Of a DNA stretch of 64,000 nt, positions 362 through 57,774 are shown piece after piece. The notes beneath the pieces were generated by a model. The model saw only the letters and a list, made by a program, of their open reading frames with translations. It did not search any database and was not told the origin of the DNA. The DNA is from Paragordius varius (taxonomy: Eukaryota > Animalia > Nematomorpha). A program made the position numbers and the translations under genes. The DNA lies in the NCBI GenBank assembly GCA_964247055.1, contig OZ176052.1, positions 10,416,001-10,480,000 on the forward strand, written 5' to 3'. Positions within the stretch are counted from its first letter, which is position 1. Every line of letters begins with the position of its first letter.

Positions 362-3300
362 ATGAATCACGTGCTACTTTTAACCATTATTGCTATATGC
401 CATATTCCCTTAATTTCAGCGTTCCCAAGGGTAAAGAAAGCAGATCCCGATCATGCTTTGGCCTGTGACCTTTTTAAAAAAATGTTCTTTCCACCCACGA
501 GTAATGTCGAAGATTACACATCTAATGTGAATTTATTTTTTTCACCTATAAGCATACGTCAGGTTTTGTCGATCCTTATGTTAGGTAGCGATGAAAAAAC
601 CCTTAAACAATTGACTTCATTGCTTTTAAGAAATCTCACTCATCCCGAATTGAAAAGAAGTATATCTCAAAGATTAAAAAGTAGTCTTGCATCACACCCG
701 CCCAGCATTGCAATCGAAAATCAAAATGGGATATTTGTTGATGCAAAAATGTCTCTGAATCCCGACTTTAAAGCCAATGTTCACCGATACTTCCCTGCCA
801 TTGTTCAAAATTTGAATATATCCCAGGATCCAAAGGCAGCCGAAACAAAGATAAATGAGATTGTTTCCAACGCTACTAGAAATAAAATCACCACCATTCT
901 TCCTTCTGGTGTATTGACCCCTGATACGCGTATGGTAGTCACCAATTCCATATATTTCAATGGTATATGGGCCAATCAATTTAATAAAAGGTATTATGGA
1001 TAGCATATTTATACCATATATATGTTGGCAATTATGAAGATTTGTAAAGGGAATAGTTTAAAATATATTTAAATTAACCACACTAATTTAGTCGCGTTTT
1101 AGGGATTCGAAACGGAGATTACCAGTTTTTATATTATCGTCAAAAAATCATAAAAACGCCGTGCCTTTGTAACATTTTATTTTTATACAACGTCACCTGC
1201 TTTTAATTTATAAATGGATCTAACATTATTTTCAAGTTTTTATGTACTCTGATCTTTATTATATTCAAATTATTGGTTTTCATAAAAATAGAGTAGAAAA
1301 TGTTTAGCTAAAACATTAGACAAAATTGTTGGAAAAGGAACATTTGTTAAAACCGTTTTTAAAAATATAAACATATGTTAAAGATTATAAATCATGGCAT
1401 ATAGCCTACGCTCACAACAGGCTTTAGACCTCGCATTAAATGATTATTTCATGTTAATGATAATGTACACTTCGATTTTATATAAAGTCTTAGTTCAAGA
1501 TAATTGTTTAAATATCACCCACGCACTTACTGGTATTCTGGTAATTTTAAAGCCTTTATAATGAACCAAAAAAATTAAATATTATGAGAAAACTAATGAT
1601 AACTACAATATTTTTAATTTAAAAAAGTGTCTAGCTGCGGATATTAAGCCATGTATTATTCCAATATTTTGGTTCAGTTTAGGGGTTCCTATACTTTAAA
1701 AGAGTTAAAAAATATATTTTTAAGATATTACTTTAAATCCATTGTCCCATTAGCACCTTTGAGTGATGCTTGCCTTAAAGGGTGGATTAGTTGATGTTAA
1801 CTTAATCTTAATGGCCAGATACACTATATCTTAGGTAGGATTGGATTAAAAATCTTATAAATTGCAGAGATGTTGCTTAAGAAGATTCATATACATTATA
1901 AGGTAATTTTTTTGTAATTCACAAACTACCTTTATTAACTTTGTGCCATTAGATTTTTAAAAATTATTTTACTAACGAACTTTTTTAACGTTATTTACAA
2001 ATATAATTTAATATATTAACGTAGAATCAATGAAAAGGTTCTCATTATTCATCAGAGAAGCTGAGATAATTAATCTGACCCAACACCAATTGTCTTGATT
2101 TTTCTGAATATAAAATTTCATAAAATTTGTATTTTATGTATATCTATATACATGTTTTATACTCTAGTGAAACCAAAATGGGAACCTTTAACACTGAAAA
2201 AAATGGAAATCAATCAATGTTATTCATGAACAGCCGAAGGCGCATGCCATATGTCCGTGAAGAAATTGATATAAATGGAACACCAAAGGAAATTCAAATT
2301 GGTAAGTTAGATTATGGCAATGGAAAAGTTTCCATGTACATTATAAAACCCGGTGTTAATGCAACACTCTCTCAAATCGTAAATGCTCTAACACCAAATG
2401 TATTGGCTAATAAAGTTTTTCAACTCCCAAACAACCAAGACGTCATTTTATCAATCCCAACTTTTAACATAAGTTATGAAGATAAACTTAAAAACAAGTT
2501 GGAAGCCTTGGGTGTTACTGATTTATTTAGGTAAGTTTAATTGCTTTTAACCCTATTATTATTAAATTAAATGGATATTGTTCTAACAATTTATCGGGTT
2601 TTTTGAATGTTTCGAATTTAAGCAAACCGTAGTTGATACAAACGGATCCCATATGCATGCCAGTGAAGGACAAATTATAAAAACTTAGCTGTTTTTAAAT
2701 ATTCATATGAGGAGAGTATATAGAATATCTGACTTGCGAGCAAAATATTAGTTTAAACAATTCCACAGTCTATTTATATTATTTATATGTAACTATACAC
2801 CCGTATTTATCCTACAGAGTTGAGTTAATCATAATTCATATTAATTATTCAATTTAAAAAATATTTTTTTTACAAGCCAATATTTTAAATTTTGGATGAG
2901 TCATGGATTGTTTATTTTAAATGTATAATTTATGCAATAAGTTTGTAGGTACAGATTTATAAAAGAATCTAATATTTTAATAACAAACGAATATGTCAAT
3001 AATTACCAACTCCAGCCATAACGCGATTAAATCTAAAAAAAAACAAATTCGAAAAATAAAAAAAGTAAAGTATATAACATTTTTTAACTGATTAAAAATT
3101 TTTCTGCATAAGCCACAAATTTATAATTTTATTTAACAAACACCTTTAGTATGCAAGCCGATTTATCTAACATGGTTAAACCAAAAACAGGTGGTCAAGA
3201 ATTGTACGTTGATGAAATATACCACAAAGCCCGACTACAAGTCAATGAGGAAGGCGCCATCGCAAGTGCCGCCTCAGCTGCTGTCATAATGGCTAAATCG

Positions 3301-3408
3301 TTCCCTATCACGCATAAATTTGTGGTGGATAAACCCTTCTTATTTTTGATAGCTGAAAAAACGCACAATGATATCTTGTTTATGGGCTCATTTTCGGGAA
3401 ATTATTAG
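362..3408 (+). CDS. Secreted serpin (serine protease inhibitor), 3 exons: 362-990, 2168-2530, 3150-3408; 416 aa
   Basis: Hydrophobic N-terminus (MNHVLLLTIIAICHIPLISA). Serpin motifs FFSPISI, TRMVVTNSIYFNGIWANQF, DKPFLFLI and hinge EEGAIASAA. Canonical GT-AG junctions (aaag|gtatta, ctctag|t, ttag|gtaagt, ctttag|t), all phase 2, give one open frame of 1251 nt. Confidence 0.95.
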
Positions 3409-3570
3409 CAAAGTTTTACGACTAAGTAGTCCTCAAATATGCAAATTTTTATATGCTCTCTAATCACAACTATTACCAATGCCTAAATTTTTTCAAAACA
3501 TCTTAAAAGTTTCATAACAATCTTGTAAATTCCAAAAAACACTACAATTATTACTTGTCTTATATTTATA

Positions 3571-3576
3571 AATAAA
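3571..3576 (+). promoter_or_regulatory. Probable polyadenylation signal of the serpin gene
   Basis: AATAAA about 160 nt after the stop codon; weak evidence because the background is AT-rich. Confidence 0.3.
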
Positions 3577-9919: not shown

Positions 9920-9923
9920 TTAA

Positions 9924-10991: not shown

Positions 10992-12474
10992 ATGATTAAT
11001 CGCAAGCTAGCCAATATTAATGTTAATCATCAGCGCATATTTAATAAAATTCATACTAGTAGAATTTTCCACATGGATATGTGTAGAAATAGTATATGGT
11101 AAATTAAATTTTATTTTAAAGGTTACTGACTATATCTTCCTCAATGTTTTCTATTTATGACACATATTCACTAAAAAGTTGTCATACTGTTGCAAACACA
11201 AAAAACGACAGGTGAGGTTATATTTACATGATAGAAAATGTTTATGGTGGCCTCTTGATACCGGTCTTTTTGTGTCCAACAACTCTAATACTTTGCATAT
11301 TTGGGACACTAAAAATTTAAAGATTGTCGAAAAATATGATTTTGATAACATTTATGATATGGATATAGGAAACATCAATACGCTTATTGCTGGTAATATT
11401 TAGTTATTTTATCAAATTTATATTTTAAAATTTTGTGTAATAACATTTTTATTATAGTTTCATGTCCAAACTCTGTTAATTTGGTTGATTTGAGCATTGG
11501 TTCTTCGATGCATACTTTACGGTCCCCGTCATTTATAGGTTTTGGTCTTGTTCATTGGTCTCAGATATCAAGAAATTTACTTTGTTCCACCTCAAAAAAT
11601 AATATATTATTTTGGGATATACGCAATTCTAGTCATCCCTTGATGCAAACAGCTTTAAGTATTTATTTTTTATTCGTAATAAATACTAAAATATAACCCA
11701 AAGTATTTTTGGTATATAACCTTTCACTGATTTCTAAGTTTAATTGCATTTCATCAATGTTGTTTAAAACTCTTCCTTTTAATATTCAATAATATTATAT
11801 TTTAGTTAAAGATGGGCGGTTTAAGTAATGAAAGATTTGTTATAGTTTTACAAAATGAACATCGTTTATTGATGTTTAAGGAGATGTAAAAAAGAGATTT
11901 ACCGATAAATTTTTTTAGGAGTATGTAATGTTTGTTGAATATTTAGATGGAAACGAGGAAATAATAGCCCTAAATAGTAGCACTGATTCACAATTTTATG
12001 GATTTTTAACACAAAACGGTATATTTTATTTATTCGATGTTTTGGCTCATTCCATATTACCTTTGGTAAATTAGAGATTTAATTTCCAAGGATTTAAACA
12101 TTGACTTATTTGAAATGGAATTAAATGCCCTTATACCGACCACAAGCAATGTTCATAGATTGCGAACATTTTCATTTCTCTCTCATAATTATATGGTCAT
12201 TCCTCATTCAAATAAGTTAATTTTAGTGGAATATGATTCGTTCTCAAATAAAAATGGGGATGACAAAACGGTTGATTTTTTGACTGGAAATATTCGAATT
12301 AATGCTAAACCAAAAAGTGGAAAGACCCATTATAAATCAATAAGATTGATTGATTCCATACAAGGTTATCATTTTGGTGATATTACATGCGTCTTAAATA
12401 ATAACGGACAAAACCCTCACATTTTTTATACTGCCTCCGACGATGCTAGCATAATGGAATGGTCAATAATCTAA
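10992..12474 (+). CDS. ERCC8: DNA excision repair protein ERCC-8 / Cockayne syndrome A (WD40). Exons 10992-11098, 11122-11211, 11235-11392, 11458-11658, 11947-12065, 12091-12474; ~352 aa; true start may lie slightly upstream
   Basis: Spliced translation contains KIHTSRIFHMD, WWPLDTGLFVS..TLHIWDT, VNLVDLSIGSSMHTL, VHWS...LLCSTS..ILFWDIR and HFGDITCV...FYTASDDASIMEW, colinear with CSA motifs as I recall them (WYPHDTGMFTSSS.DKTLKVWDT; VQLCDLKSGSCSHIL; LWDVR; GH...VDCC...LYSGSRD.NILAW). All junctions are GT-AG and frame-consistent. Confidence 0.82.
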
Positions 12475-12616: not shown

Positions 12617-15600
12617 TTATGTATTAACTACATGCCGAATCCATCCCTTATGCCTACGAATATTAATGAATAAACTCGATCCCCCGGTTTTACAATTCGT
12701 TTTTGTCCTGTAGAACATTCCTATTAGGTGCTGTTTAACTAAACGAATATGAACATAATTGATTATGATAATAAATTTTTCGATGTTGAGCTAAAAAATT
12801 TATATCATATTGTGTTATCATGACAAATATGGATAGTCGAAGTTTTACATTTGACAATATGATAAATGATATTTAGTGAATCTCCTTTTTTATTTTATGA
12901 TTAATATGTACCTCCGACACGAGCTAACAATGGTGAGCCCAGCTCATTTTCACAGGGAAAACTTTGTAAGTATCTCGAGTCCTCTGGAATACCTTGAGCA
13001 CATATAACTTCTCTTTCTGGGTCATTGTTGTTATCATTAATGTTATCTAATTCAGGGCAATTTGTGGAATTTAACAGCTCAAAAGTTGCAACATGTGGGA
13101 CAGAAGCCATTCGTCCATTATCTGTATAAAATATATTTGTTTTAGTGGTGATTTAAATGTGGAAAAACTTTTTTTATTTTATGAAATACCCGAAATTTGA
13201 ATTGTTTTGTTAAAAAGTTTATTTTATGTATTTCTCTGAGAATCTGATGATATAGGTATGACATATATTTCTTGTATAAATCGATATCCGCCTTAAAATA
13301 TAAATAATAGTCATGGATTGTTTTGATAAAATATTGATTAATAGTAACCGTTATAGGGGTCACAAATAATGTTTGGATATAAATTTAATGTTAATATTAT
13401 TTACTAATATTTCCCCAACTCGCATACAATACAGAAAGGCCTGGAGTTAAAAACACGCCATCATCACCGAAACAAACCGGCTGTACTACCGAAGTGTATT
13501 CCATTTCATTCAAGTTGTAAGGATAAGTATATTGATTATTGAGAGGATGATCAGGTTCTCCTCCAATTTTTAACATTTGCAATTTCATATTATCGTATCT
13601 TGACACTATATTTCATCAAATTATACAATTAAAGGAGATAAATTTTAAAGTTCATTTGATTATATTAAATCAGATGATTATTATAGGACCTAGATCCTAT
13701 AGTTTACATTTTTGTTCGAAAAAATTTATTTTTGGCTCATTATGCTGGTTGCATGAAGCCCAAGACTGCTATTTTTGCGGGAAGGAGTACTAAATTTTAA
13801 AGAATTATAATGATAAAATTAATGCCCTTAATATGCTACACTTCTTTTTAAATTCTGCCTGCGCAACATACAATCGCTTTCAGAGTGAATTCGAACGGTT
13901 GTAAATGAAAATTTTTTTAGCCATTTCTAAAAATAATCAGTCTTTTTTTCAACATGTAAACGGTATAAGCAGTAAGTTCGGTATGTTTTTAACGGTTTGA
14001 AACCACCCCTTTAATTCACTACCGTCGAATTTACAGTTTTTGCCAAATTATCACATTTGATTATTTTATAATTATAATTATCCCAATAGCAGATTAATGT
14101 TTGATATAGTTATTTTATTAGTATATTATTTATTTTAACCTTGTGGATTAGTTACTGCTCTATTAATGGCATATATCCTTTCATCAATATCATAAAAGAA
14201 TGATAAGTAATCTCCCGTTTTGATGTAGTAGTCGCGTAAAGGATATTGCGATGTACAATCAGCCAACGTTAAAATCCACTTTTTGTTAATTATGATTCCG
14301 GTACACACAGGATCTTTCCGATTTTTTAGCATTATTTTCGCAATCCTGTGACACATAATTTAAACATTATTATATGATAATTTAATATATAAATTAGAGA
14401 GATTTTATAATCTAGATGCTACCAACTTATATAATTGTACAAGTATATAATATAGAGTACATGAAATTGGGAATATAAATATACTTATATATATTTATCT
14501 GATAATTAGATGTATATTATAATTGATTTAAAGAGTTTTTACAATTATGCCTATAATTAAAGTAAATTAACCTTTTAATCAAAATTCGGAGGAGTTTTCA
14601 TTATCGAATTATACAAAATAGATTCATTATAGTTTAAAACAGTTTTATACCGTTTCCCTTATGCTTTGAATACTATAAAATTTGCTTCACCAACGTTTTG
14701 CCATAAATTAAATTTTTAAGCAAAATATCCATTTTTTGGAATTTCAAAAATGTCAAAAATTAGGACATATTTAAATTTTTTATTGCGTTATATCGGCATT
14801 TTTGTTTTTAGTTTAAGATAACTAGCCAATTTTCTAGTGGCAAAAATTTGCAATCTTCGGAACTTAAGTCGAATTTGTGTTTAATATTAATATTGTTCTG
14901 CTTTTAATGTAGTTCATGATTTTTGGGAAGGAAAATAGTTTTATCAAAAAAAAATTTTAATTGACAGAATATGCCATATTGTGATTTTCGTTATCGAGCA
15001 ATTGACACAAGATTGCAAATAACATTCTTTTATCATTTGTCAATCCTAAAGACTATGCCTGATATGTTTTTTATCAGAATATATATATTTTATAAGGATG
15101 CTCTCTCTCCCTCAGATTTTGTGCGTAGTTCTATATTTCATACATGGATTTTTTAATGTTCGTTTTACTTTATGTTATAGCCATCCGATAGTCCTGATCA
15201 ACGCATTTTCGTTGTTGCTTTCTGTTATAAGTAGGGTTGTGCATTTGACTGTTTTTTCAAAAAAGTCCGGTCAGACCCAGTCAGATCATGGTCATGACCA
15301 CTTTTTACTTAAGTTAGTATCCGATATTAAATTGTCAAAATAATGTTCGAATTACACTTGCGTTTCACTAATAATGTCATGTTTTTTCTGGAAAGTTTGC
15401 ATACATTTTTTTGATAATTATTATTTACAAATATCTTCAATCGAATTTAATCAAGAAATTGTGTTCAAAAATTTTGCCACATGTTTAGAGCCTTCTGAAT
15501 CTTCAATACGTAGCTTTTAACACTGGATATTTCAAATAAAATTTTACCTAGTATGTTTTACACTTTCTTTCATCATTAAAATATCCAATTATATTATGTT

Positions 15601-18600
15601 TTATTGGTTCATATATATGGAATAATTGCATTTGCAAAGTGCTTGATTGTTTTGTTTTTAGAAATAACTGGATATGCTTAAATGCTTATGTTATAAGGAG
15701 TCATGTTTAAAAAATTTTAATATATTGTTAAATAAGCATATATAAATATTTAATTTTTATTTTGTTAAAAAATTTATTAAAAACCAATAAAATCTTATTA
15801 TCTCTCTTCCAAAAAAAATTTCTAGCATTTTTTCAAAAAACAGGTGTTTGTTTCAATGACCACGGTCAAAAAATAAATAGTCACTGCCCTGGTCATGACC
15901 CGGTCACCGGGTCATGACTTGGTCACAACCCTAGTTATGAGTTTAATCAACTTTTTTTATATCACTTACCTATTCTTTTCTAAAGCTATATAAAAAAATA
16001 CAAAACAAACCCTATTAATCACCTTTTATTAAATTAATTTAGTTATATTGATCTGATAGAATTATAATCTATCATTTATCTTAATATCAGAAAACTGGTA
16101 TAATTTAGCGATAATTTTAAAAATTTGAAAAATTGCGAACGGAAATCAATTATATATTAACATTAAATTAAAAACTAAACCTCGGTTCATTATAAATTTA
16201 AATTAAATAAATTAACAAGAATAAAAAAATTTTTATGCTTCTAAATTGATCCATTAATACAATATTATATACCAGGGTACAGGGTATCTTGTAGCTACTC
16301 CATTTATCAGTCGAGCTTGTTTTATATTAGTTACACCATAATCATAGATGTCGACTGAAGGGGATATACCGCATTCAGGGGTTCCTTTATGCATTTTTAA
16401 ACAAATTTATTTAATAGAGTGAAAATAGTTGTTGTGATAAATTAATTATCTAATCATAACTTTAACTCTAAATTTCCGATTAGAACCAATCGTTAATTTA
16501 TTTACAATTTTAAAATTTAAGTTGATTATAATATTACTAATTGTTGCGAAAAATGATTAATTTCAAGTATAATATAATATTTTAATTATACAATTGGAAA
16601 AACTTGTTTCCACCTGAACTCTCCAGTCATAACTATTTACATAAATTAAATTAATTTATGTGAGTAAAAAATGTTTCCAACAATTAGCTAATTAAAATGT
16701 GTTAATTAATTATTATCTGTCATTTCAAACTATGCTCTCGCTTACATGGCAATATCCAATATTATTTTGGATTTTAAAAGCCCTTAAGCATTCATAAATT
16801 CAATCGTAAAGCGCAATGGATTCTGTCAAACAGTATATACAATAAAAATCTTTTATTTTGGAAACGAAAAATCCAAATTTTAGGACTTAGTATTTGTCTT
16901 AATAATAACATAATACTGCTAATCACAATATTATGTAGTATTATTTTTAAAATTAATCGATCGTTTATTTAAACATTCGCTAAAAACACAATGGAAATCG
17001 GAAACATTAGCGGTATTTATATTTTAGTTAATACTCAATAAATTTATAAAATGTTTGTTTTTTGACTTGCAATATCTCAAGATTAATTACAATGTTTTTT
17101 TATTTATTAATAAAGAATAATGTGTTTTTTAGGAGTGCGAGTGGATATTATAATTAAATAAAAATTTCCGATATACTTAACCCTTAATTCGCCGCGTTTC
17201 ATTATTTTTTAAAATTATCGATGGTTTATGAGTAAATTAATGGTCAAAAATTACATTGAAATATTTTTCGCAGCCTATGTGATCACACGATTCGAATATT
17301 TCATTGTTCCAAAGTTTATTAACCTTTTTCGACAAAAACATGTAAAAAATATTTTTGAATTTGTTTTACGTATAACCACCGCATTTTAAATTAGTAATTT
17401 TGATCTAGGCTCCATTAAAATAATGGTTTATTTTATTTTTACCACACATTAAAATATCTTAGCATTGTATTTCAAATTTGTAACATATTTAAAAAGGTTA
17501 TATTGATGCTTTTTAGCTTTTTTAGATAAATTTTCTTCAATAAAAAACAATAAATACAAACTGGAATCACAATATCTTCCATAAAACCCTGATCGGCATT
17601 GGCAATATCCATAACTGTCACAATTTCCTGTGGATTGGGTGTTATTACGACACGGACAATCTGATAAATTATTTAGTATAAGTATGTTAAATTATATGCT
17701 CTAAATGAGTTTGCCACAACAATATTTAGAATCCGAGATGAGGGCAATTACAATAACACCAAACTAATTTTTTGAAAAAATTCCATATTTGATATAAGTG
17801 TGCATGTTGGCCGAATGTCAGGGCTAATTGCTATATGGGGTAGAAAAATATCCAAAAAGGTAAATATTTTAAAACGCACATAGAGGGTATGTAACACATA
17901 AATAATTTATATATTTTGATATTAACGAAACTCACAAATTACATATAATAAATTAAAGAAAGATAAAATATGAAACATTCTTAAATACAAAAATATCAGG
18001 GCTTCAAGCTGGTTCGAAAAAAAGGAAACCAGAACGGGTTTGGTTACTAGACGATTAAAACCAAACCGATCTGGGATTGAACTCAGCAAGTGGAACCGGA
18101 ATCGGGTTGGCTTCTTTACAAGCTACGTTTGGGAACGGTTTTATTTTGGTTCATGACTTAACATTAAAAGATTTTGATAAAACATTTTATTATTAATCAA
18201 ACCAAAATACAACGTAAATTAAAACATATTATATCAGAAGTAGGTAATAAGTATATTTGTATAACTATCGCATATATGGAGCTTTAAAAATGATTTTACG
18301 AATAATTAGGTCGTCCGACTTCTTCTCAAATCTGAAATATAAAATTCAGCGAGGGAAAGTGGTTTTCTAAGTGTAGAGCTGTAATATATACCGCTAATGT
18401 AACATTACATGACAAATCTAATATTTTTAGATGTGTGGCCAAAAGAATTTTGGTGGCTAATGCAGCTTGTGGGCTGCGGATTACCACTAATATATAAAGT
18501 GACTCATTTTTTTCCGTTATGGATAATTTATTATGGACGCTATAGTTTATGGTATTGTGAGATTTTTAAGGTAGGTATTCTTTATCTATAGACATTGTGT

Positions 18601-37320: not shown

Positions 37321-37579
37321 ATGAAGCGATTTGTTTTATGGGTAGCATTTACCTTGATTTTGTATATATCTCCAGCTTTTTCATTCATAAATTTGAACGA
37401 TCTTGGAGGTAAAAATTGAAATTTAATTTTGGTCAATTTAGATGTCAATTGCAGTCATGCGATTAAAAAACACTGCCAAAGTTTACATAAAAGTCTACCT
37501 GGACAACTCCCAATCAGTTTTAAAGTCTACATTGAAAAATTGGGTAAATTGGCATAACCCCTAATTTTTGCTACATTGT

Positions 37580-37614
<35 letters not shown>

Positions 37615-39404: not shown

Positions 39405-39445
<41 letters not shown>

Positions 39446-42400: not shown

Positions 42401-42766
42401 TATTTTTGGTATTATTAATACATATCTTTTTAGGAATATTGTGAAAATCCATATATGGAATGGATTTTGAAAAAAAATTTACTTTTAACGCTTGGATCCC
42501 TGGAATCAGCTAAACGGAAATTCTCGTGCAAGCCTCTTCATATATCCTGTGAAGATGAGCTACTTAGTATAACAACATAGATATATCTTTAAACTTTATA
42601 TTATTAAACTATTGGGTTCATGATTGTAATCATTATTTTATCTATGATGATTTTTTGATTTATTTTGGTTAAAATAAATTTTTCAGCATCCATCCTTTTT
42701 AAACTGTTTTACCTAGTTGTTTGTGAATTCATTCAAATAATATATATACCACGATTTGATAAATGA
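37321..42766 (+). CDS. Diverged M13 (neprilysin/ECE-like) homolog, predicted non-catalytic. Exons: 37321-37408, 37442-37543, 37616-38091, 38249-38389, 38978-39040, 39072-39110, 39151-39293, 39463-39679, 39852-39911, then tentative 40142-40230, 42050-42090, 42158-42219, 42291-42356, 42434-42548, 42581-42667, 42687-42766 (622 aa model)
   Basis: Signal-like N-terminus, C-x7-C, NVKAVYDSCM (cf. KAK.FY.SCM), KIDW, TLLKDFLILRV (cf. TLANY..WR.V), ARCV (cf. RW..CV) and ILFKLFYLVVC (cf. QLFF...AQ.WC). All 16 exons join in frame with GT-AG. The 3' half is far less certain; a possible extra terminal exon lies at 43177-43233 (IFWVKSTACGFSSVPECV*). Confidence 0.62.
40817..41398. mobile_element. TA-flanked MITE (582 bp) with CCATTT termini and aaggaccaacttga subterminal repeats, intronic
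   Basis: ta|ccattttcacttcaag ... cttgaattgcaaatgg|tatata. The repeat motif occurs 4-5 times on the right and inverted on the left. Confidence 0.65.
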
Positions 42767-45293
42767 CAAATTTGGTAATGTAAGTTTAATTTTTCGAAAA
42801 AATTTAATTATAAATTTTTAACGGTTATAAGGATATAAATAGTAGCGTAGTAAAAGGAGGGTTTGGAGTTAACTTAAGAGCCATAATTTAGGTGTACGGG
42901 CTATTTTATTCAAAAGGTATTATAACAATCAATAGCCAAAGAATAATATTTGACTGAGCTGGATTTTAATACATTAAAAAATCTCAACTCAAAATTAATC
43001 TTTGCAACAAAATTGGGCATCAAATTTAAGGATTGAACCTTATTGACAATTAATATATTTATTAAATTATAAAATTTGTATGGAATATATTTTAAACGGG
43101 CCTATCGAGCCTAAAATGTTACAATATCACAAATGCCTAAATTGCTAAATCGCAAAATCCGCTCACATTATGGTAGATTTTTTGGGTAAAAAGCACAGCT
43201 TGTGGTTTCTCCTCGGTTCCTGAATGTGTTTAAAATAGAAACAACATATAATTTATATCTCAAATTTAGTTCATTTATTAACTGATTGCTTTGTAGTGGT
43301 ACAGGTGTATATATATATATTTTAGCAAGGATAATTAACGTAATAAATTAGAATACTATTTGTATCAAGTACAATGTCATATAAAATATCCATATATATT
43401 AAACTACTTATTAAATACAATGTCATATAAAATATAAATAATAATTTAACTTAAGGTTATAAACTTGGCAACTATAAATACCATTATACAATGTCATATA
43501 AATTAAATAATGAATATAATTAACTTAAGGTTATACCAAATTAACAGTTCCATTTTCATATTACCATGAACCAACCCGCTTCCGGTTTCAAACCATCAAA
43601 ATGAATAGGTCCCATATGGTTTTATTTAAAAAAATAAAATTTTTTGTTAAAATATTTAATGTATATTGTAAAAAAATTTTCTAGTTTCTTATCAAATTAG
43701 AATGATTACATTTTAAAATTTGTTTTATAAAAAAATTTTTGAATAGAATTGATCGTATGATAATCGTATCTAATTTAAATGGAATTACCATGTTGACAAT
43801 ATTTTTGGATATCTTACCTTCAACGATTGAAGAAATCCACAGATATAATTTAAGTAAATAAATTGATATTGGTAAAAACCAAAATTAAATCGTGCATAAT
43901 AAATTACCCATAATAATAAAATATGAGCCCCGCTATATATCAGTGATACTCAAACCGCAGTCCTTAAGATTTTTTGGCGACAGATTTAAAGGTATTGTAA
44001 GGTTGCATTAGCGATACATTTTATGGCTCACAATACACAAAAAAACTTTTCAAATTTTAAATTTTTGGATTTGATAAGTAGTCTGACAGAATTTTCCGTA
44101 CAAACATTTTTAAAGTTGTTAAGATTTTTTCCATAGGTATACAAATACTCTTTTTACCTACCTTTGCATTTATACATTTGGCCATTTAATTTATCTAATA
44201 AACTATGTGATTTACCATTATTGATATTTTAATAATTACAATAAAAATGTTGTATAAAAATCATTTAATAAAAAGATAGATACCAAAATAAAACCGATCC
44301 CAAATGTAAAGAATCGGCTCCGTAACTCTTAATTTTTAAGGGACCACCCCTACTCTATTTTTAAATTTTTTGAAACCAGGTTCTGGTTCTAACTGTCCAG
44401 AAACCACGACACTTGTTCCGATTCCCCTTCTTCGAACCCGTTTGAAGCCCTGGGAAAAACTAAATATTTTAATTGGTATTTTAAGCTTTCCTTCAATTGA
44501 TGTTGTGTTTTGTCAAAATTTATTGCTTGAGGACTCACGTGCAACTTTAAGTTTACAAAATAGGCTCTTGCCAGTCGCGATAAAAAATTTATTTAGTGCT
44601 ATATTTATAGAATGAAATGTATGCTCAAAAATCGCTTATATTACTTCTCAGTAAGACTTATCAGCATGTTATTAAGGTGTATATGTTATTGCTATATATA
44701 TACTTTGTGTGCAAATAAATTTTTAAGAAAAATTTTTTTTTTCACGAGATAACTTATGACCAGCGTATTCATTTGCCTCAAAAATTTTAATTTGTTGACA
44801 ACCTAGTTTTTGAAATATTGAAAGAAAATCGAAATCGGGCAAATTAAAATTAAAGATAATTCAAAAAACAATGATAAAATTTGAAATATTATGGTTTATT
44901 CATTTTAGTAAATATTTTCAATATATAAATAGCCTAAAATCATAATAGTTAGGGTGTCTATAAAATTTCAGCTCAAAAGATGGCGTTCTTTTATCACACT
45001 TAAAATACAAAAAAAATTTAATTTCTATCTTAAAATAATTTTTTTAATTATTTACTACCTAAACTGACTATTAAAATCTTAACATTTATATTATATTCAG
45101 TAAAAAATACTTATATATCAAAATAAAACCCAAAATATTGTTTATTATTTTTGCATTTTTTTGTCATCTGGTTTATGAGTGTATAAAAAATATATATTGT
45201 TTTTTGGATTTTTACATGAGTGGGAATCAAGTTTATAATTTATGCAAAATAGGATTTAAAAGTAGTGGAATATCAACCAACATTCCTCTAATC

Positions 45294-47420
45294 CAGTGAT
45301 ACTCAAACCGCGGCCCGCGGGCCGCATGCGGCCCTAAGAGTGCTTTAAAATTGCCCTATGACCATAATGATAGATATTTTTTTTATTGATGAATTTTTAA
45401 AATACACATAAACGAATTTTCGCTTATTTTAATATCAATTTATTTTCTTTACATCTATTTCGTAATTTCTATTTTTTACCCAATTCGGTAGAAAAATTTC
45501 CCTAAAAATGATTTCCAAATTTTGAAACACGTTGTCTCTGTTTCTGTATTCTATTTTCTATTTTGAAATTTTTATTGAATTCCTTTTTTGTATTTCAGCA
45601 AGCTTTTCACCCAAACTTGCATATACATATTTTTTCCATAGCGATCCTAAATTATTTTTTATAACTCCCATAAAATATTTTTCAAATCAACATCATTAAA
45701 TTTTTACCTATTTTTTATAGCATAATTCAAATTATATTCCTATTTTTTGCAAAAATTTACATAATATTTATAAATTTAAAGGATGACATCTAATGCTAAA
45801 AAACGTATACTGATAAAAATCGCTCTTTAAAAAGGAATGGGAAGAAAAATTCTTTGTCGTTTTTAAAAATGTTGATACTTGCCTTATATGCAAGATCAAC
45901 ATAATTATTGAAAAATACAATATTGAAAGACATTTTACAATCTATCATTCTCATAAATTACCAAAAAATCACGAGGAAAGAATAATTAATAAATTAAGGA
46001 ATTATCAGAAAGAAAATCTATTATTTTTATAGCTTTCTCCCAGGAAAAGCTGTAACATTAGCTTCGTATGAAATTTGTTATATTTTAGGAAAAATATGAA
46101 ACCGTTTACTGATTCCCAACTAAGAAAAGAATGTCTAATAAGTGATAGCTCTTTTTTCGATAATAATGGTATATTTATCAAAAAAATTGGTTTCGATCTG
46201 CACAAATGGCTGTCCCTTTATGAAACGAAGGATTTATTCCTCTTTTGAAAAACAAAAATAATTTGAAAAATATTTACTCAACAGCAAAACTTGGTTTCCT
46301 GTGTAAAAGATGAATCACTCAATTCAGTAATTAAAACGGTTGTGGATATAGTTAACCTACGAGAGAATTTAGCAGCCGTAAATTCTAAACCCTCTGAAAG
46401 ATATCCACAGTGAGTTTAATAATATTCTTTTGTACACCGCTGTGAGATGGCTAAGCCTTAGCAAAGTATTAAATAGATTTTTTGTTTTAAGAAATGAGAT
46501 TGTATTATTTATAAAAGACAACAGAAAGTTTGACAAGGAAATTAATAGTGACCAATGGTGGGTTTTTTTGCCTACCTTTGCGACATTTACTTATAGACTT
46601 AGTCTTAATACAAGTTTCCAAGGGAGCAAAATATTAACCCAATTTGCTAATCAAATATTTGCTTTTGAAGAAAAATAAATAATATATAAACAAGAATTTA
46701 TAAATAAAACACTCCTATATTTTCCAACATTTAAAATAGACAATCATTTTGCATTTTTATATAATGAAATGAAATTTAATTTGAAGAACTAAAAAATATT
46801 AAAAATTGCTTAAAACTCGTGGAAAATCCATGGTATGGATATATTTAATATTAAGCAATTTGAGCATCTCGGTTTTGATCAGGCGCTTATCATTGAAGAA
46901 TTCGTAGATTTTAAAAATGATTCCAATTCGGAGGCTATATATAAGGAGAATCGAAGAGAAGAAAGATATGTATGGTTTTGGCAAGATGTGCCAAATAAAT
47001 ATGAAAATATAAAAAAAATGTGCTCAAGTTATCCTAACTGTTTTTTCTCAAGTTACCCGTGGACAGCATATTCAAAAATAAGGTATCTCAAGAATAGATA
47101 CAGAAATCGCTTAACCGATAATCATATAGACGACGTATTAAGATTGGTCTGTCATGAGGCGAAACCAAATTTGTCAAAAATTATTGGTTAATATCAAAAT
47201 AAATGTTGTTATCAAAATATTTATTTTTTTAAACTAAATGGTGCAAAACGAGTTTTTAGTTGGATTTACATGCGGGCATAAAATTAATTGTGCTGATTTA
47301 AAGTATAAATATGTGCATATGTGTCAAATAGCTGTGGAAATTTGCTATTATAAGATTCTGGCCCTCGAAAAAAATATATATTTTATTTGGCCCGTCAAAT
47401 TTTTTTCGTGAGTACCACTG
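45294..47420 (+). mobile_element. Decayed autonomous-type hAT transposon (GTF2IRD2/Charlie/Buster-like), 2127 bp
   Basis: TIRs cagtgatactca / gtgagtaccactg and perfect 8-bp TSD ctctaatc. Broken transposase pieces: KKEWEEKFF..TCLICK...KYNIERHF (BED-type), YTAVRWLSLSKVLNRFFVLRNEI, and KNRYRNRLTDNHIDDVLRL. Confidence 0.92.
45785..47191 (+). pseudogene. hAT transposase pseudogene (frameshifts, stops, internal deletions)
   Basis: Motifs listed above lie in different frames; ORF-track pieces 46430-46678 and 46835-47191. Confidence 0.88.
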
Positions 47421-48139
47421 CTCTAATCCCTGTAGCAAGTCTGTTTTATGACAAATTAATATTTGTATTGGGATTTGTACGGATTGTTGGTTGACATTCC
47501 ACTAATTTTAAATCCTGTTATGCATAAATTATATACTTTATAATTCGTACTCATGTAAGATTTCAAAATAAAACAGTATAAATTTTTTATACACTCACAG
47601 AACAGATGACATTAATGTAAAACCGAAAAACAATGTTTTACTATATATCAGTTTTTTTACTGAATAAAGTATGAATTTTAAGATTCTAATGGTAGTAAAT
47701 AATTAAAAAAAAATTTAATATAGTTTTTTAAAAAAATTTGTCTTGTGAGTGTTTTAAAAAACGCCATCTTTGAGCTTAAATTTTATAGAAACCCTAACTA
47801 TATGATTTTAGGCTATTTATATATTGAAAATATATCCTAAAATGATAATAAACCATAAAATCTCAAATTTTATAATTATCCGTAATTTTCACTTTTTGCC
47901 CGATTTCGATTTTCTCTCAATATTTCAAAAACTGAGTTGTCAACAAATATTAATTTTGGCAGCAAATGAATTCAGTGGTTATAAGCTATCTCATGAAATA
48001 ATTTTTTTCGTTAAATCAAAAATGGCCCTGTTTTTTGCACACAGTGTATATATATTTTAGGAAATGTTAACGTCGCATGAGCATTATAAAAAAAATCGGT
48101 CACTGATGGTTTCTTCTTTATTAAAATTTTAGAAGTATA

Positions 48140-48440: not shown

Positions 48441-48637
48441 AATTTTGGATTTCGGGACACAAAATTTGACATTTTTGGACCCGTTAAAATGTTATACCAA
48501 TCGATGCTGCTAAATCTTTCCATAATTTCATAGTGATTAGCGGAAATTGAAATTAATTATGTGTGTTTTTTAATGACACTAATATAATTTGAAGGCAAAC
48601 TCTTTTAAAATTTTCAGCAGAATAGAATAATGTAGAA

Positions 48638-48985: not shown

Positions 48986-49069
48986 AAAAGATCTTTATAA
49001 TTATAAAAAGCGAAAAGGAATTTATTATAGCATAAATTATATCTTTGTGTACAAATTATATTGCATTAT

Positions 49070-49362
49070 TGTTATCTTTTAAGATAAAGAGATAATATAA
49101 GAAATGTGAAATGAACTATTTATTTGGTTTTTTTAGGGTGTATATATAGTAATTTTAGTTGTACATGATTTGCATTATATCAATAAAATTTCAAGTAACA
49201 AAGGTTATAATATTTACATAATACACAAAAAATATAGAAAATAATACAATTCAAATAACGGTGAAAGTTATGATATATAACCAAGGTATGTATTTCACAT
49301 TTGCATGTAACGCAGAAAATCAAGATATAAAAATAAAGTATATCTTTCAGATTTGCATAACA
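49070..49362 (-). repeat. 3' LTR (~293 bp)
   Basis: On the minus strand it begins tgttatgc right after the polypurine tract and ends ataaca (TGTTAT...ATAACA). The distal boundary is inferred from the terminal IR only; no second LTR was found to confirm it. Confidence 0.65.
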
Positions 49363-49365
49363 TCA

Positions 49366-49375
49366 CTTCCCCCTT
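49366..49375 (-). other. Polypurine tract (aagggggaag)
   Basis: Lies between the pol stop codon and the LTR start. Confidence 0.8.
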
Positions 49376-51960
49376 AAGAGAACCGGACCGGCTTCCGCCG
49401 AATTCTCTCGGGGTAACGACGCTCGTGCGGATTTACATTGATATTGTCATTATTGTTATTACTGTTATCATTACTACTTTCATTATTATTATCATTTATT
49501 TTATCATTATTACTACTATTGTTATTATTATCAATACTACTACCATTATTATTATTGTTATTGTCTTTATTACTATCATTACTATTGTTTGGAGTAACCG
49601 GTGCGGGTGAGTTGGCCGGTAGGTCTACGTGTTTCAACTGATCTGCATGCTTTCTGACAATCTTCTGGTTTACCTGATCCCACACACTGTACGAAAGGAG
49701 ACCCGTTCTATCAACAACATCGCCGGCTCGCCATCCAAAATTTTGTTCGTTTCTCATCATTACGGGTTGGTTTATTGAGAATTCACGGCGTGGACGGGGT
49801 GCGTCTAAGATTGTTGCTTTTGTGTTGATCCAGGTGAGGGGTGTTTGAGATACTCGTTTGAAGAGTAGTTGAAACGGGGTTTCTTTTGTAGTCGCATGTA
49901 TTGAATTACGATACGACCATAGAGTGGTATTGAAGGCTTCTTGTGGTGAAATATTATCATTTTTGATTTTTCTATACTTGCCCTTGAGGGTCCCAACTAA
50001 CCTTTCTACCATCCCATTACTTTAAGGATGATAGGGGGTTACTCTCACGTGTTTAATACCCAAGTTTGTTAAAGTGGATGTGAAGTACGAATTACTAAAA
50101 TAAGAAGCATTATCACTAATTACCGTCCTCGGAAACCCAAACCTGGCAAAGGTTTCCTCGAGTTTATGCAATATGTTTACCGAATTAACCCGTTTTAACA
50201 TGAACCCTTCCGACCATTTTGATGAGCTATCAATCAATAACAACCAATAATACCCGTCAACTGGTCCCGCTATATCGATGTGTAACCGCTCCCATATCGC
50301 AGCATTTGGATCCCATTGATAAGTCGGATTTTCACCTAGGCTTGGCTTGTTTACTTGACATGAACTACACTCACTGTATCTTCTTACCAAATCGTTCTCT
50401 AATTTTGGCCAAAAACAGGTAAACCTTGCCATTGCTTTCATTGTTTCTACATTATTATGCCCGCTGTGTAAGTAATTGACCACATTTGCCTGTAAGCTTT
50501 CTGGGATGATAATACGATCGTTTAAACTGAGCAATCCGTATTGGTACGAAATCTCTCCCTTCCGATTCGTAAACCCAGCCAACTCAACATCACTCCAATC
50601 TTGGTTATGAATCGCCTTAATTACTTTCTGCAAAATTTTATCCTTAACCGTTTCTCTCCGAATTTCATCGCGACTTAACTGAACGTTATGACAATTTAGG
50701 AACCTGAGATGTCTAGTTACCATGTAATCTCTATCGATTGTGTCAACATTATTATCACCGGGACATCTTGACAAGTAATCGGCTCTATTTTTCGGACCCG
50801 CCTGATAACTTAGTTCAAAATCATAATCATTCAAACGGTTAACCCATCTTAAAACTTTCGCATTTTGAATTTCTTTCAAATTTCTATCCCTATTTATTAA
50901 CCTAACAAGTGGTAAGTGGTCTGTCAAAATTTCAAACTTTCTACCATAAATGAAGTTGTGGAACTTTTCTAATGCAAAAACAATAGCCTTTAATTCCTTT
51001 TCTATCGTGGAGTAGTTTAATTCTGCGGTACTACATTTTCTTGAACCATAGGCAATAGGTTTCCTTTCACCATTTACAACATGACTTAGAATACATCCAA
51101 ACCCTATATCTGAGGCATCGGTTTCAATTACTAACTTTCTATCCGGATTGTATGGTGTTAAAAATACTTGTTCACTTAATAATTCCTTAGCGGCTTTCCA
51201 ACAATTCTCATGTTTTTCCGACCAGTTCCATCTGACGTTCTTACTTGTTAAACTATGTAAATCACTTACAATCAATTGAAGCTTGGGTATAAATCTTTCA
51301 TGGAATGTTAAAAATCCTAGAAAACTTCTTAAAGATTTTTTATCCACAGGTTTTTTAAAATCATTGATTGCTTTTACTTTATTCTTGCAAGGACTTATAC
51401 CTTTATTACTTATTTCAAATCCCAGATAACTTACTGAAGGTTCACCAATTTTTATTTTATCTTTTCTTAATCTAAAACCTGCTAATTCTAACCGATTTAA
51501 AACATTATTAAGATTTATTAAATGTTCCTGTTCAGATTTGCCAGTTACTAAAACATCATCTAAATATGCACAAGTGCCGGGACAATCTTTTATAACCTGG
51601 TCCATGACTCGTTGGAAAATTATTGGTCCTGTTGACAGTCCGAAAGGCATCCTTTTGTAGCGAAAAAATCCTTTGTGAGTCGCAATTGTCAAGAGATCTT
51701 GTGATTCTTTGGTTATGGGCATTTGTAGATAGGCATCTTTCAAGTCAATCTTAGTGAAAACTTGGCCTTCGCCAATCTTACTCACTAAATCATCAAACGT
51801 TGGAATGATATGAGAGTCCTCAGTGAGCCACTTGTTGATGGTAACTCTAAAATCGCTGCAAATTCTTACCTCTCCATTCGCTTTGAGCACATTAACGGTG
51901 GGCGTGGCCCATGTCAGAGGTGTAAGGTTGGGATCTATAGGCTCCAGAATTCTAACTTTT
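49374..51960 (-). pseudogene. pol (RT-RNaseH-integrase) with in-frame TAA at 50022-50024
   Basis: PYHP*SNGMVERLV is in frame; the motif PYHPQSNG implies a CAA-to-TAA change. WATP..V.K.NG.VRIC, PFGL, YLDDV, HIDIAGP and ISDNA are present. Confidence 0.92.
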
Positions 51961-53140
51961 GTAATCTTAGTAATTCATTTTCAGCTTTTGCTCTTAGGGG
52001 AAACGGTACTCGGCGGCAAGGCCAAACTTTGGGGGAGGCATTGGGTGCTATATGAATTGTAACTGGCTCAATGTAACAACCTAATTCTTCTTTAAATAGA
52101 TTAGGGAAATTTTCAATAATTTTATCAAGTTCAAGAAAGTTAATTCGTACTTTAGAAATGTCGATGTTAAATCTCGTGATCCAATCCAAGCCACAAATGA
52201 GCGGTGCCTTTGACATTTTTTCTTTCAATACGCAACATTGTGCGTTCCCCAAGTTTTGCCCATTGATTTGCACTGTGACTGTTGTTACGCCCAGTAGAGG
52301 TACTATGCTATTATTGTAGGCTTTTACTGGCTTTATGGGTCTAATATTTGGCTTGCCAACTTGTTTCCAGATGTCAAAGCTGATAACACTGATGTCAGCT
52401 CCAGTATCATAGATAAACGTTTGTTCTGTCTTATTTATCATTATTTTTACGGTCCATGGTGAGGCTGGCATTGCTTTTCTATGGATCTGGCGGTTGAACA
52501 AATTTTTGGCAGTGTTTTTTGATCTACACATTTTTGCGAAGTGATGAGGTTTTCCGCATTTATTGCAATTGCGGTTCCAGGCAGGACATTTGTTTGGTCC
52601 ATGGCTATTACCACAACGATTGCACGAATGTGTTAGGGGTTTTGCTGTTGGCTGTCGTGAACGCATGGCCTTGTTATTATTATTGGTGTGTTGTAATCGA
52701 TTTAAATTATTACCATTGTTATAATTGGTATTATCATTATTGTTATGAAGGCCAGCCCTGGCAACCTCGTGTGCTAGTGCGAGATCCACTATCGTTTCTA
52801 GAGGCACGGGTTGTCCGTTGATCTCGGCATCGGGATACCTTGAATGTATGTCAATTTCCAATTGTGGTTGCCGTAACCCAATGACGAAGGCATCCCGAAT
52901 CCGTTCCTCTATTGAATCCTTAAATTTTGCCTCTTCGGCTGCGATCTTTACCCGTTCTAGAAATTGGGTAAACGATTTGGTGTTGTTCCGCACAAGTCGA
53001 AAAAACTCAAATCTGCTTTGGAATTTTGACTTTGTGGGATTGAATACCTTTAAACCCGTTGCCATTATCTCGGTCCATTCTGCATCTTTTATCTTTTTCG
53101 GATAGAGTCGTTGGTTGATTTGCGTCCCACCATTAGACCT
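51935..53140 (-). pseudogene. gag-protease, N-terminally truncated, 1-bp deletion near 51952 shifts frame from pol
   Basis: RDAFVIGL, CNRCGNSHGPNKC..CNKCGKPHHFAKMC and YDTGADISVI are present. Adding one G restores KLGILEPID. The frame stays open upstream of the ATG at 53065 to ~53140. Confidence 0.88.
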
Positions 53141-53467
53141 TCAAAATTTAATGTTTAAATTTTTTATCGCGCAATTGAGGCGTTTTTGCATATATTTTAA
53201 GAAAACTAGATGTTTTTAGAGGAGAAAAAAATTGTGTCATTTGGAGCCCACGTCTAAGAATTAAATTTTTTAAAAAAAATAATGTTTTGCTTTTTTGGGT
53301 AATTTATAATATATTTGATGAAATTTTTCGGAATGAAGCGCTTAGCTTTCACCAAAAAATATTATTTAATTTCTTATATGGAACATCTATATCATAAAAA
53401 TTTAATAACTTTCATATCTTTAAGCGCCAAAACCAAAAGCACCTAATCCTGATACATTTTCCCATAA

Positions 53468-53478
<11 letters not shown>

Positions 53479-53509
<31 letters not shown>
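53479..53509. repeat. (TA)n microsatellite directly after a foldback-family end
   Basis: atacattttcccataagaa followed by a TA run. Confidence 0.9.
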
Positions 53510-53512
<3 letters not shown>

Positions 53513-54850: not shown

Positions 54851-55597
54851 AATTGGATTTTCCACAACAAGGCGATGAACGACTAAATTTTAGCAGAAAC
54901 CGATTTTATTAGATCTTACCGACGTTAATTCAAAAAGGGATTATTAATATTTTTGTTTAAAATACTATTTTTTTACTAATTTTGATAGAAATAAAATGAT
55001 ACGTTAGATTTTCGTTCCTGAAGCTAACATTGTCGTCCGACTTTAAATCATAGATCCAAACTAATAAATCTGTCTAAAGAATAATGCGTTGGCTATCCAC
55101 CATATATAGATGCTAATGAACGCATTAATGAAGGTGATGTATTAAAAACGATTTAATGATATTCGTTCAAAAAATAAGGAAATTACCAATTTAACTTAAT
55201 TTAAAAGTAGGCTATAATTTCCCAACATAGGTCTTTATTCCCTTGTGCTTCAATTATGTAGGGATCATATTAACAACTTAAATTTTATGAATTGCCGAAA
55301 TAAAAATGGCCCCACCATCCATCAATTCAAGTTTTTTTATATATTTTGTGTCTGTCAAATGAAGCATCAACTTTAATTATTTTTTTAAATTGAGTTTGAT
55401 TATGAAATATTTTAATTTAGGGTTTTTATAACTTAATATACAGCCAATTTGAAAACAATCCCGGATATGCGAGCATTTGATTACAATATAACATTCTCAG
55501 AATTTAATAGGTATTGGCGTTTTGCGGAAAATATCAAAGTTAACACTCTACAAATTTTTTATTCATATATATATATATATATTACAGGATTTATTAA

Positions 55598-56145
55598 CAC
55601 TTGGATATAACACATTTTTTTCAGTCCTTCTTATTGGGGTAGTTAGATACCTCAGGATTGTTTGAAATTAAATATTTTAAAAATTAAATTGAAACCATGG
55701 CAAAAGTTTGCACTTGTATAATATTAATGAACGGGAATATAATAAAAAATTAATGCAAAATACTAGATATTACTTTTTAGGGGTAAAACCCAAAGGTATA
55801 AATATAGCCAAAATGACATGTGTGCATAAGCTAAATATAAAATAAAGCAAAATATACCACTTTTTTTGTTTATTGCAATGTTAAATGTGATTTTAATAAA
55901 AATTAAATTTACAAATAAACACGAAATTTCGCAAAAATGTTGTAAAACAAAAATGGCGTCCAAGTAGTTTGATACGGAACTTATTTTCTAAAACTAAATT
56001 TTATTTAGATATTTTGGCTTATTTATATAATCTCATTAGGAAAGAAGCATAAATTTAATATGGAACCGTTACTTTTAGTAGTTTTTATAAATATTAACTT
56101 AAATTTTGTCTAAGGTATTTAGAGATCCCAATTTGAATCGAAGTG
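55598..56145 (+). mobile_element. piggyBac-like MITE, complete copy (548 bp)
   Basis: TTAA at 55594-55597 and 56146-56149; both family termini present. Confidence 0.88.
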
Positions 56146-56745
56146 TTAATATGGTGATTTTAACCGACCTGTAAAATATTAATATATTAATGATTGTAAT
56201 ATTACTCAAACATCAAAAACGAAGAACAACTATATAATTAATTATATAGCCAGACATCTGAAAGTCAAATCCCTGAAAGTATACTGAACAGAAAAAGATG
56301 TCAAATGATGAAAATTTACAATAATTCATAGCTTGCGACCATTAAATAACAAACTTAGACATAGGTACATTAAACGGACAATTGGCTAGAGTAGGAGGAG
56401 TTACTTTAATAATTTCAATGCCTATCTTTTAAATTAACCCGAATATTTTCGTATATTTTATATTATCTTAAGGTTTAAAAACATCAATCGCTTATAGTTA
56501 TAATTTTAGTCCTGAAGACAATTGTATCGAAGTATTTGGTATTCCATGAACTTTCATTTTATACAATTTAAATGAAATATCCATATTTACTATGATCCTT
56601 GGAAAACTAAATTAGTTTTTTTATTATCCAACTAATGCATAAGATTAAGTTTGTAGAAAGTAGAATAAATAAATATGATATAGTATTGCTATAAATTATA
56701 AAAAAATTGCGTGTTAATTTAATTAAACATATAAAATATATATTA

Positions 56746-57774
56746 TTATAGCCAATGTCTTTTACAGACTTTTTGACATTCAGCTTTGGTTGAAAATCTA
56801 TTTGAGTTTCCTTGGCAGCCTCCGTATATGAATGAGATGCATTTCCCAGCTTTGTGATTATAGTACCATTTGGGAATAGCCGCTCTACAGGGTCCCACTT
56901 CTTTAGGTAGTTTACATATCTTGTTTAAACTTTCAGTCAAACAAACGGCTAATGATATAATGTAATTAAAATTATGCAATAAATATTTTAACTACATTCG
57001 CGTGAATATTTTTAAACTAATTTAAGTTAAATTCCTACTTATAACTGTAGAAATGAATATACTTCAATAAAAAATTATACAGTTTTAAGTAGGGTGTCCA
57101 ACAAAAATGGCTTTGCGGGTTGCATCGAAAAAAATAAAACAATGGCCATCAATAAATATTTTGTCATGCGTCCGTAAAAAACGAACACAATATATACTAA
57201 AATTTGGTTTAATCCGTTGGCAAACGGAAAGATATATTTAGATTTGCCTATTTTCTATGTTTATTTTCAATATTAAGCTCTGATTCTAAATATTTTATAT
57301 TTTTCGTCCATAAAAATTTTGGTTGAATGATAACATGCCTTAAAGTACTAATAGTACTTTACGAAATCCAATTTAAGTGTAGTATGTGGTATATTAATTA
57401 AAAGCCTTAAATTAACCCTTTACAGAACAATTAATGGAGTTTATTAAACGAAGATATAATTCTAAATAAATAAAAAATTTGGTTTTCCAATTTTTAGCGG
57501 GCTTTACAAATTCTTAACCCCCGCTTGTTGTCCACCTCTGGTTTAAAGTCTAAAATCTCTTTTACTTTTTTATAAAAAACTATTAATTTGTATTTAAAAC
57601 CCTAAGACAAGGGGCGGATAGTAACGATAGATAAATTTGCAGTTTTTATATTTGAATTTTGGCACATTACATATATATAATCACTTTTTGAACAGAATTT
57701 ATATATTTAATGGAAAAATATTGATAAATGTTACCTGCTACCAAAATTAAAGATACAACATAAAATATATTCAT
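56746..57774 (-). CDS. Secreted single-domain BPTI/Kunitz protease inhibitor; exons 57774-57735 and 56948-56746; 80 aa
   Basis: Signal exon MNIFYVVSLILVA with phase-1 donor (gcag|gtaac) joins acceptor cattag|cc. Domain CKLPKEVGPCRAAIPKWYYNHKAGKCISFIYGGCQGNSNRFSTKAECQKVC has all six Cys plus YGGC and N.F motifs. Confidence 0.93.
57090..57540. mobile_element. hAT (Buster-like) MITE in the Kunitz intron (451 bp)
   Basis: Ends tagggtgtccaac / gttgtccacctctg. TSD gttttaag / gtttaaag (7/8). Confidence 0.7.

Follow-up and report, generated by a model that had tools for sequence, protein, structure and literature searches.

Four protease-related genes within 58 kb of the Paragordius varius genome are probably coincidental neighbours

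Basic-P1 serpins and Kunitz proteins are deployed jointly against the serine-protease cascades of the host in tick saliva and in the venom of entomopathogenic nematodes (PMC5447049, PMC5398726), and nematodes parasitic in insects disable the defences of these hosts with secreted Kunitz and serpin proteins (PMC3787073, PMC5398726; review PMC11818254). Here we analyzed a stretch of 64,000 nucleotides from the hairworm Paragordius varius (contig OZ176052.1, hereafter C3, positions 10416001-10480000; the whole stretch is called the window), in which 58 kb encode a serpin, a Kunitz inhibitor, a trypsin-like domain that has lost its catalytic residues, and a protein that probably descends from neprilysin. 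Like the multi-family inhibitor repertoires of those parasites (PMC5447049, PMC5398726), the set in the window combines a basic-P1 serpin with a Kunitz protein; unlike those repertoires, which are defined by expression and secretion, what defines it is the physical linkage of its genes.

An earlier note on this DNA had read the set, two basic-P1 inhibitors and two predicted dead proteases, as a possible co-regulated host-interaction cluster. The presence of four protease-related genes inside 58 kb is largely confirmed, with corrections to the structure of the pseudoprotease, to the basis of the assignment of one gene to the M13 peptidases, and to the identity of a further gene taken for ERCC8. 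As for the linkage, we favour, with a probability of about 0.6, the reading that these are four independent secreted-protein genes of dispersed families, which are coincidental neighbours in a mildly enriched region (C3:10.19-10.76 Mb) and form no jointly regulated unit. We favour it because no paralogue repeats the linkage and because the genes are spread over both strands at distances of 10-15 kb. The WD40 gene, the remnant of a hAT transposon and the young Gypsy element that separate them also argue against a functional unit. As far as the sequences can be read, only the serpin and the Kunitz gene would interfere with proteases; the other two appear to share ancestry with proteases, and of their products, previously called dead proteases, one resembles a mosaic protein of an adhesive or matrix type and the other an orphan binding protein, neither of them an evident decoy. 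The features of the set, with the evidence for each, are the following.

362-3408, + strand: secreted serpin of the inhibitory type (Pfam Serpin on three exons, GT-AG junctions in phase)
12620-16406, - strand: trypsin-fold domain of five exons (Pfam Trypsin, ESM Atlas, phase)
24133-17452, - strand: eight laminin-type EGF exons, the N-terminal part of the mosaic gene (Pfam EGF_laminin, phase, paralogue layout)
37321-42577, + strand: secreted protein, probably derived from the M13 N-terminal domain, no HExxH (paralogue conservation, hhalign, Atlas)
56746-57774, - strand: secreted single-domain Kunitz inhibitor (Pfam Kunitz_BPTI, PDB matches)

Linkage of the four genes

The assembly (110.6 Mb, 44 contigs, 25-34% G+C) is that of a very AT-rich animal genome. 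All searches were made exon by exon, with single exons as queries, and the families were screened genome-wide with Pfam in six frames. The screens gave 80 serpin exon hits at 33 loci, 51 Kunitz domains at 23 loci, 95 trypsin exon hits at 41 loci, and 13 M13 loci; when divergent members are included, the genome holds about 33 serpin, 23 Kunitz, at least 46 trypsin-like, and 26 M13 or M13-derived loci.

For the array-level pair test, the Pfam-detected members in the window are the serpin and the Kunitz gene only. A serpin-Kunitz pair within 58 kb was seen once, against 0.53 expected genome-wide (P(>=1) 0.41), and Pfam-detected pairs of any two families within this distance numbered 6 against 3.1 expected (P 0.10). 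Around the 12 M13-derived and about eight EGF-pseudoprotease paralogues, no serpin or Kunitz gene lies within 58 kb, and outside the window no stretch of that length brings together three or more of the four families. Cross-family pairs genome-wide were in excess at 100-500 kb (11 versus 5.0 and 35 versus 22.6, P about 0.012) but not at 58 kb or less, and this pattern fits regional heterogeneity, not a tight cluster.

Other counts weigh against coincidence, and the permutation check of the proposed cluster was divided to this extent: the serpin-Kunitz linkage is expected by chance, while the linkage of all four families is rare under uniform placement. The four families came together within 58 kb in 14 of 40000 uniform shuffles of the arrays (3.5e-4), and in 0.6% or 2.9% of those in which the arrays were jittered by at most 500 kb or at most 250 kb, where the shuffled set includes two families recognised only by close inspection of the window and the background is uniform or jittered placement. 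These P values are corrected for the position in the genome only; the theme was chosen post hoc by the reader of the sequence, further divergent members may exist elsewhere, and secreted-protein genes may cluster in general. In addition, nine protease-related loci of the four families lie in the surrounding 575 kb (C3:10.19-10.76 Mb). C-type lectins, taken as a secreted control family, gave just two matches in the genome, and a word-index protein search with serpin exon 1 returned no contigs of relatives.

The regional enrichment could reflect a neighbourhood of endogenous extracellular proteolysis, in which the genes share a chromatin domain or a tissue programme (turnover of the epidermis and cuticle, the gut, or the reproductive tract) and regulate the trypsin-like proteases of the worm itself, some of which are encoded nearby at C3:10.19, 10.59 and 10.76 Mb. 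The mild but significant cross-family excess at 100-500 kb, the nine loci around the window, and two further places where a Kunitz gene and a trypsin-like gene stand 2-4 kb apart are all consistent with this. We nevertheless consider it unlikely: the unbiased Pfam set has no excess at 58 kb or less, and the counts would look no different if secreted or lineage-expanded genes clustered in general.

We rank coincidental neighbours first, a shared endogenous expression domain second, and a host-directed island third. In the last case the four genes would be co-expressed in a secretory tissue of the parasitic larva and their products released into the insect haemocoel, where Arg/Lys-specific clip-protease cascades (prophenoloxidase activation, Toll, clotting) would be blocked and the pseudoenzymes would act as decoys or scaffolds. 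Secretion signals are present or probable in all four products, both inhibitors have a basic P1, the four-family co-occurrence is nominally rare, further Kunitz and trypsin genes lie within 120 kb, and the insect-parasitic nematodes cited above offer a precedent for secreted Kunitz and serpin proteins. Yet the linkage is absent at the paralogues, unrelated genes and transposons lie in between, the pseudoprotease is joined to eight laminin-type EGF modules that give it the look of a matrix or cell-surface protein, and the M13 assignment is only moderately supported, so that joint release into the host seems to us quite improbable. The fuller proposal, a co-regulated island of four unrelated folds (two basic-P1 inhibitors and two pseudoenzymes) secreted to silence the serine-protease immune cascades of the insect, we judge more improbable still. 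For the serpin and the Kunitz inhibitor individually, interference with a host would be a reasonable idea.

If the linkage were functional, it would constitute a physically linked effector locus of several folds in an animal, a rare animal case of non-homologous genes of one pathway kept together, and a lead on how hairworms survive in the insect haemocoel. The descriptive value lies in two ordinary-looking and probably active basic-P1 inhibitors and in two divergent families, all of which a secretome or expression study could take up, in a phylum of which little is known. The inhibitors offer little that is new, the two divergent families a modest amount.

The serpin and the Kunitz inhibitor

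Inhibitory serpins with Arg or Lys at P1 include protease nexin-1 (SERPINE2), antithrombin and the serpins of Fasciola (PMC7437470). The window serpin resembles them in its full domain, its hinge (G-A-I-A-S-A-A), its basic P1 followed by Ser, and its predicted secretion, whereas its last exon shows an identity of just about 30-40% and its loop has two additional residues on the primed side. The gene consists of three coding segments (362-990, 2168-2530 and 3150-3408; 1251 nt and 416 residues in total) joined at canonical GT-AG junctions in phase 2. Exons 1-3 match PF00079 at positions 16-173, 172-289 and 292-367 with E values of 1e-37, 5e-15 and 2e-19, and the N-terminus is a hydrophobic, signal-like segment. 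The three-exon layout is common to other serpins of the same genome, including the closest paralogues, which lie 0.95 Mb away.

Among solved structures the last exon matched protease nexin-1 best (E 5.5e-13). The loop EEGAIASAASAAVIMAK|S aligns residue for residue with the protease nexin-1 loop, with K over the P1 Arg: 'VIMAK|SFP' of the serpin stands over 'ILIAR|SSPP', and because of this alignment we assign Lys to P1 and Ser to P1'. The loop also aligns to antithrombin, and the hinge upstream of P1 is made of small residues, as in the inhibitory type. The secreted serpin with P1 Lys that had been proposed is therefore supported by the Pfam match, the gene structure and the alignment to protease nexin-1, and it is an ordinary and probably inhibitory serpin.

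Single-domain Kunitz/BPTI inhibitors, to which BPTI, tick boophilin, the domains of TFPI and Steinernema Sc-KU-4 (PMC3787073) can be compared, have six Cys in a canonical spacing, and the window Kunitz shares this together with the GPC-R-A loop with P1 Arg, the YGGC core, and a gene made of a small signal-peptide exon and one domain exon. It is an ordinary member of the group with no unusual feature. The signal-peptide exon of 40 nt (57774-57735) joins the exon at 56948-56746 in phase 1, giving a precursor of 80 residues with a single domain that covers positions 1-53 of 53 of PF00014 (80.6 bits). PDB matches were SmCI, boophilin, TFPI and BPTI, with E values from 1e-51 to 1e-13 against solved Kunitz domains. 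Since the reactive loop reads GPCRA, P1 is Arg; this loop, the PF00014 match and the signal-peptide exon uphold the earlier reading as a secreted Kunitz domain with P1 Arg.

Judged by sequence, both proteins have everything expected of a functional inhibitor of trypsin-like serine proteases. They would act by the standard mechanisms, the serpin as a suicide substrate and the Kunitz protein by tight binding, and their targets may be Arg/Lys-specific proteases, either the worm's own or those of the clotting and prophenoloxidase cascades of the insect host.

Two Kunitz paralogues neighbour the window gene at 54 and 115 kb, with roughly 40% identity to it as judged by eye. A recent segmental or block duplication was considered as the origin of the three regional Kunitz genes and rejected; they are old, divergent copies that share short repeats only. 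One dispersed repeat of 0.3-0.55 kb is present at least seven times in the surroundings of the Kunitz gene (window 55590-62503) and is also found near the other two Kunitz genes of C3. Elsewhere, single-domain Kunitz genes (P1 Lys, P1 Arg) stand 2-4 kb from trypsin-like genes at C3:10587916/10591585 (L055) and C7:4342205/4344148 (L057), in one case on the same strand, in the other on opposite strands; in array-level shuffles two such pairs compare with 0.75 expected, which is not significant.

Two divergent families

Vertebrate protein Z and the clip-domain serine protease homologues of insects are trypsin folds that lack the catalytic triad and follow other modules. The window protein is like them in that a triad-less trypsin fold lies C-terminal to EGF-type modules and in that an Arg cleavage site is retained ahead of the fold. 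It differs from them in its modules, which are eight truncated laminin-type EGF modules instead of Gla plus EGF or clip; moreover, all three triad residues are replaced, and it belongs to a family of about nine genes. We know of no described protein with exactly this architecture of a laminin-EGF array and a dead trypsin fold, though no exhaustive search for one was made, and the mosaic family appears to be previously unnoted.

Within the five-exon trypsin-fold domain, the exon that carries the His57 position (14138-14359, - strand) reached 23.1 bits with Pfam Trypsin against a cut-off of 20.6, and the exon with the Ser195 position (12904-13110) was assigned to Trypsin by 29 of the 30 named ESM Atlas clusters. 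The other three exons had no significant match, either with Pfam or by tblastn against the canonical trypsin genes of the genome; when twelve of these genes were compared by tblastn, the His57 exon matched, the last exon did so weakly, and the others did not. At the His57 position the protein reads LADC where active enzymes have AAHC, so that His is replaced by Asp. The exon 13400-13612 has Lys at the Asp102 position ('NMKLQMLKI' in place of 'NDIMLIKL') and retains 'SWGN', and at the Ser195 position 'CENELGSP' stands in place of 'CQGDSGGP', with NELGSP for GDSGGP and hence Leu for Ser. A trypsin-fold protein without its catalytic triad, as claimed before, is thereby confirmed both in its fold (Pfam and Atlas) and in the replacement of all three residues, and the domain is predicted to be unable to catalyse.

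This domain had also been described as a gene of its own, which does not hold: to judge from the exons, it forms the C-terminal end of a mosaic protein whose gene also has eight EGF_laminin exons. We conclude this because the EGF exons upstream are compatible in phase and because paralogues are laid out in the same way. The first protease-domain exon (16257-16406, 'ECG...QAR|LINGV...PVPW') begins at an AG acceptor in phase 1 and has neither a start nor a signal of its own, and an activation-like site, 'QAR|LING', is retained before the fold. Directly upstream on the same strand lies the EGF array, whose exons are six-Cys modules in phase 1-1; several of them match Pfam EGF_laminin with E values from 1e-5 to 8e-7, and the final module has a GT donor in phase 1; the predicted splice from the array to the protease domain would lie near 17567 to 16378. 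A signal-peptide exon of the mosaic gene was not located, and comparison of 24-37 kb with the paralogues yielded dispersed repeats only. One repeat in the window, at 34400-35200, recurs in the examined loci of the paralogues.

The His57 exon has eight distant paralogues, which makes a dispersed family of about nine genes. At the three paralogue loci that were examined (C4:12.25, C1:3.71 and C6:6.47 Mb), EGF_laminin exons again lie ahead of protease-like exons, and one of them has a single open exon (L048:6181-6429, - strand) in which an EGF module is found together with the beginning of the protease domain. At a further paralogue (C2:1.595 Mb) there is an EGF_laminin match 3 kb upstream on the same strand. 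His57 is absent from all copies of the family, most of which escaped the genome-wide screen with Pfam Trypsin. Loci of the family outside the window include:

C4:12.252-12.272 Mb (L048/L049)
C1:3.713-3.733 Mb (L050/L051)
C6:6.468-6.488 Mb (L052/L053)
C2:1.592-1.596 Mb

The mosaic protein may be an extracellular binding or scaffold protein, possibly cut at the retained Arg activation site.

The fourth gene is best compared with neprilysin and its relatives, the M13 peptidases. Its product resembles Peptidase_M13_N remotely in two exons, which are collinear with that domain and have one exon boundary in common with it. Unlike neprilysin, it lacks HExxH and a Pfam match to Peptidase_M13, carries a signal peptide instead of a type II membrane anchor, is much shorter, and belongs to a 13-copy family that has no detectable relatives outside this genome. 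The exons were defined by conservation among 12 paralogues, and they comprise a signal-peptide exon at 37321 and about seven further exons, the last of which ends at 42577. Conserved exons lie near 37321-37416, 37420-37554, 37615-38100, 39151-39294, 39455-39676, 40106-40192 and 42434-42577, and the recognisable coding length is roughly 490 residues. The 13 copies, partly in tandem arrays, are distributed on C3, C2, C11 and C6 as follows:

C3: the window
C2:14.01, 14.05, 15.04 and 15.07 Mb
C11:1.75 Mb
C6:1.53-1.61 and 2.41-2.49 Mb

The absence of HExxH stood up, as none was found in any + frame from 37200 to 42900, but the M13 assignment itself proved weakly based. A Pfam scan of ten candidate exons with E up to 10 gave nothing relevant, and the genome-wide M13 screens (M13_N; PF01431) had no match in the window. 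A profile built from ten paralogous copies of exon 3 had no relevant match among PDB sequences and zero matches among 1.84e9 representative proteins. These negatives would be expected if the gene were unrelated to M13 peptidases, in which case the protease theme would have three members; so would the shortness of the protein, roughly 490 recognisable residues where M13 enzymes have 700 or more. An AlphaFold2 model of the exon-3 fragment reached a predicted local distance difference test score (pLDDT) of 58 and a Foldseek search with it found nothing in the PDB below E 0.09, which also agrees with an unrelated gene, although the use of a fragment makes this result uninformative. On the other hand, hhalign aligned the exon-5 family profile with M13_N exons from six true M13 genes of this genome at a probability of 44% (E 2.3e-4), and the profile begins, as those exons do, with the same motif at the exon boundary. 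In exon 3, 'KA-Y-SC' aligns with 'KAK-Y-SC' of M13, for which hhalign gave a probability of only 7%; this motif and the exon-5 match follow one another as they do in M13_N. An ESM Atlas feature search with exon 3 returned Peptidase_M13_N in 30 of 30 clusters, with a top score of 0.97. Weighing these, we regard an unrelated origin as doubtful and descent from the M13 N-terminal domain as probable. The protein would then be a non-catalytic binder, and the family a secreted orphan family of 13 copies, seemingly of neprilysin descent.

Interspersed genes and transposable elements

Three other features lie between the genes of the set, the latter two both between the M13-derived gene and the Kunitz gene.

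11161-12471, + strand: WD40-like gene, taken for ERCC8 before (weak WD40-type PDB matches)
45025-47723, + strand: hAT-like transposon remnant (inverted repeats; the hAT reading was made by eye)
49062-53143, - strand: Gypsy-type long terminal repeat (LTR) retroelement (Pfam RVT_1, RT_RNaseH, rve, gag-asp_proteas)

We could not confirm the identity of the first as ERCC8. No Pfam family reached the cut-off, a word-index search with the WD40 exon found no relatives, and the PDB matches were generic WD40 proteins with E values of 0.09-0.9, ERCC8 itself being matched at E 0.81. The gene appears to be a very divergent member of the WD40 type.

The hAT-like remnant, which does not belong to the protease theme, is bounded by inverted repeats of about 260 bp (45025-45286 and 47481-47723) that are 76% identical. 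Open reading frames at 46430-47188 had no Pfam match, and their likeness to the C-terminus of hAT transposases was seen by eye only. In the Gypsy element, gag, aspartic protease, reverse transcriptase, RNase H and integrase are contained in long open gag-protease and reverse transcriptase-RNase H-integrase frames; a gapless repeat search did not find its LTRs. Because many of its 47 genomic matches are 97-98% identical, the element seems to have been active recently.

Outside the window, 7 of the 11 matches to astacin (PF01400) are found no more than about 35 kb from the end of a contig, which suggests a subtelomeric gene family; matches are at C6:10.078 and 10.091, C5:13.531, C1:15.211, C4:0.02 and C8:0.03 Mb.

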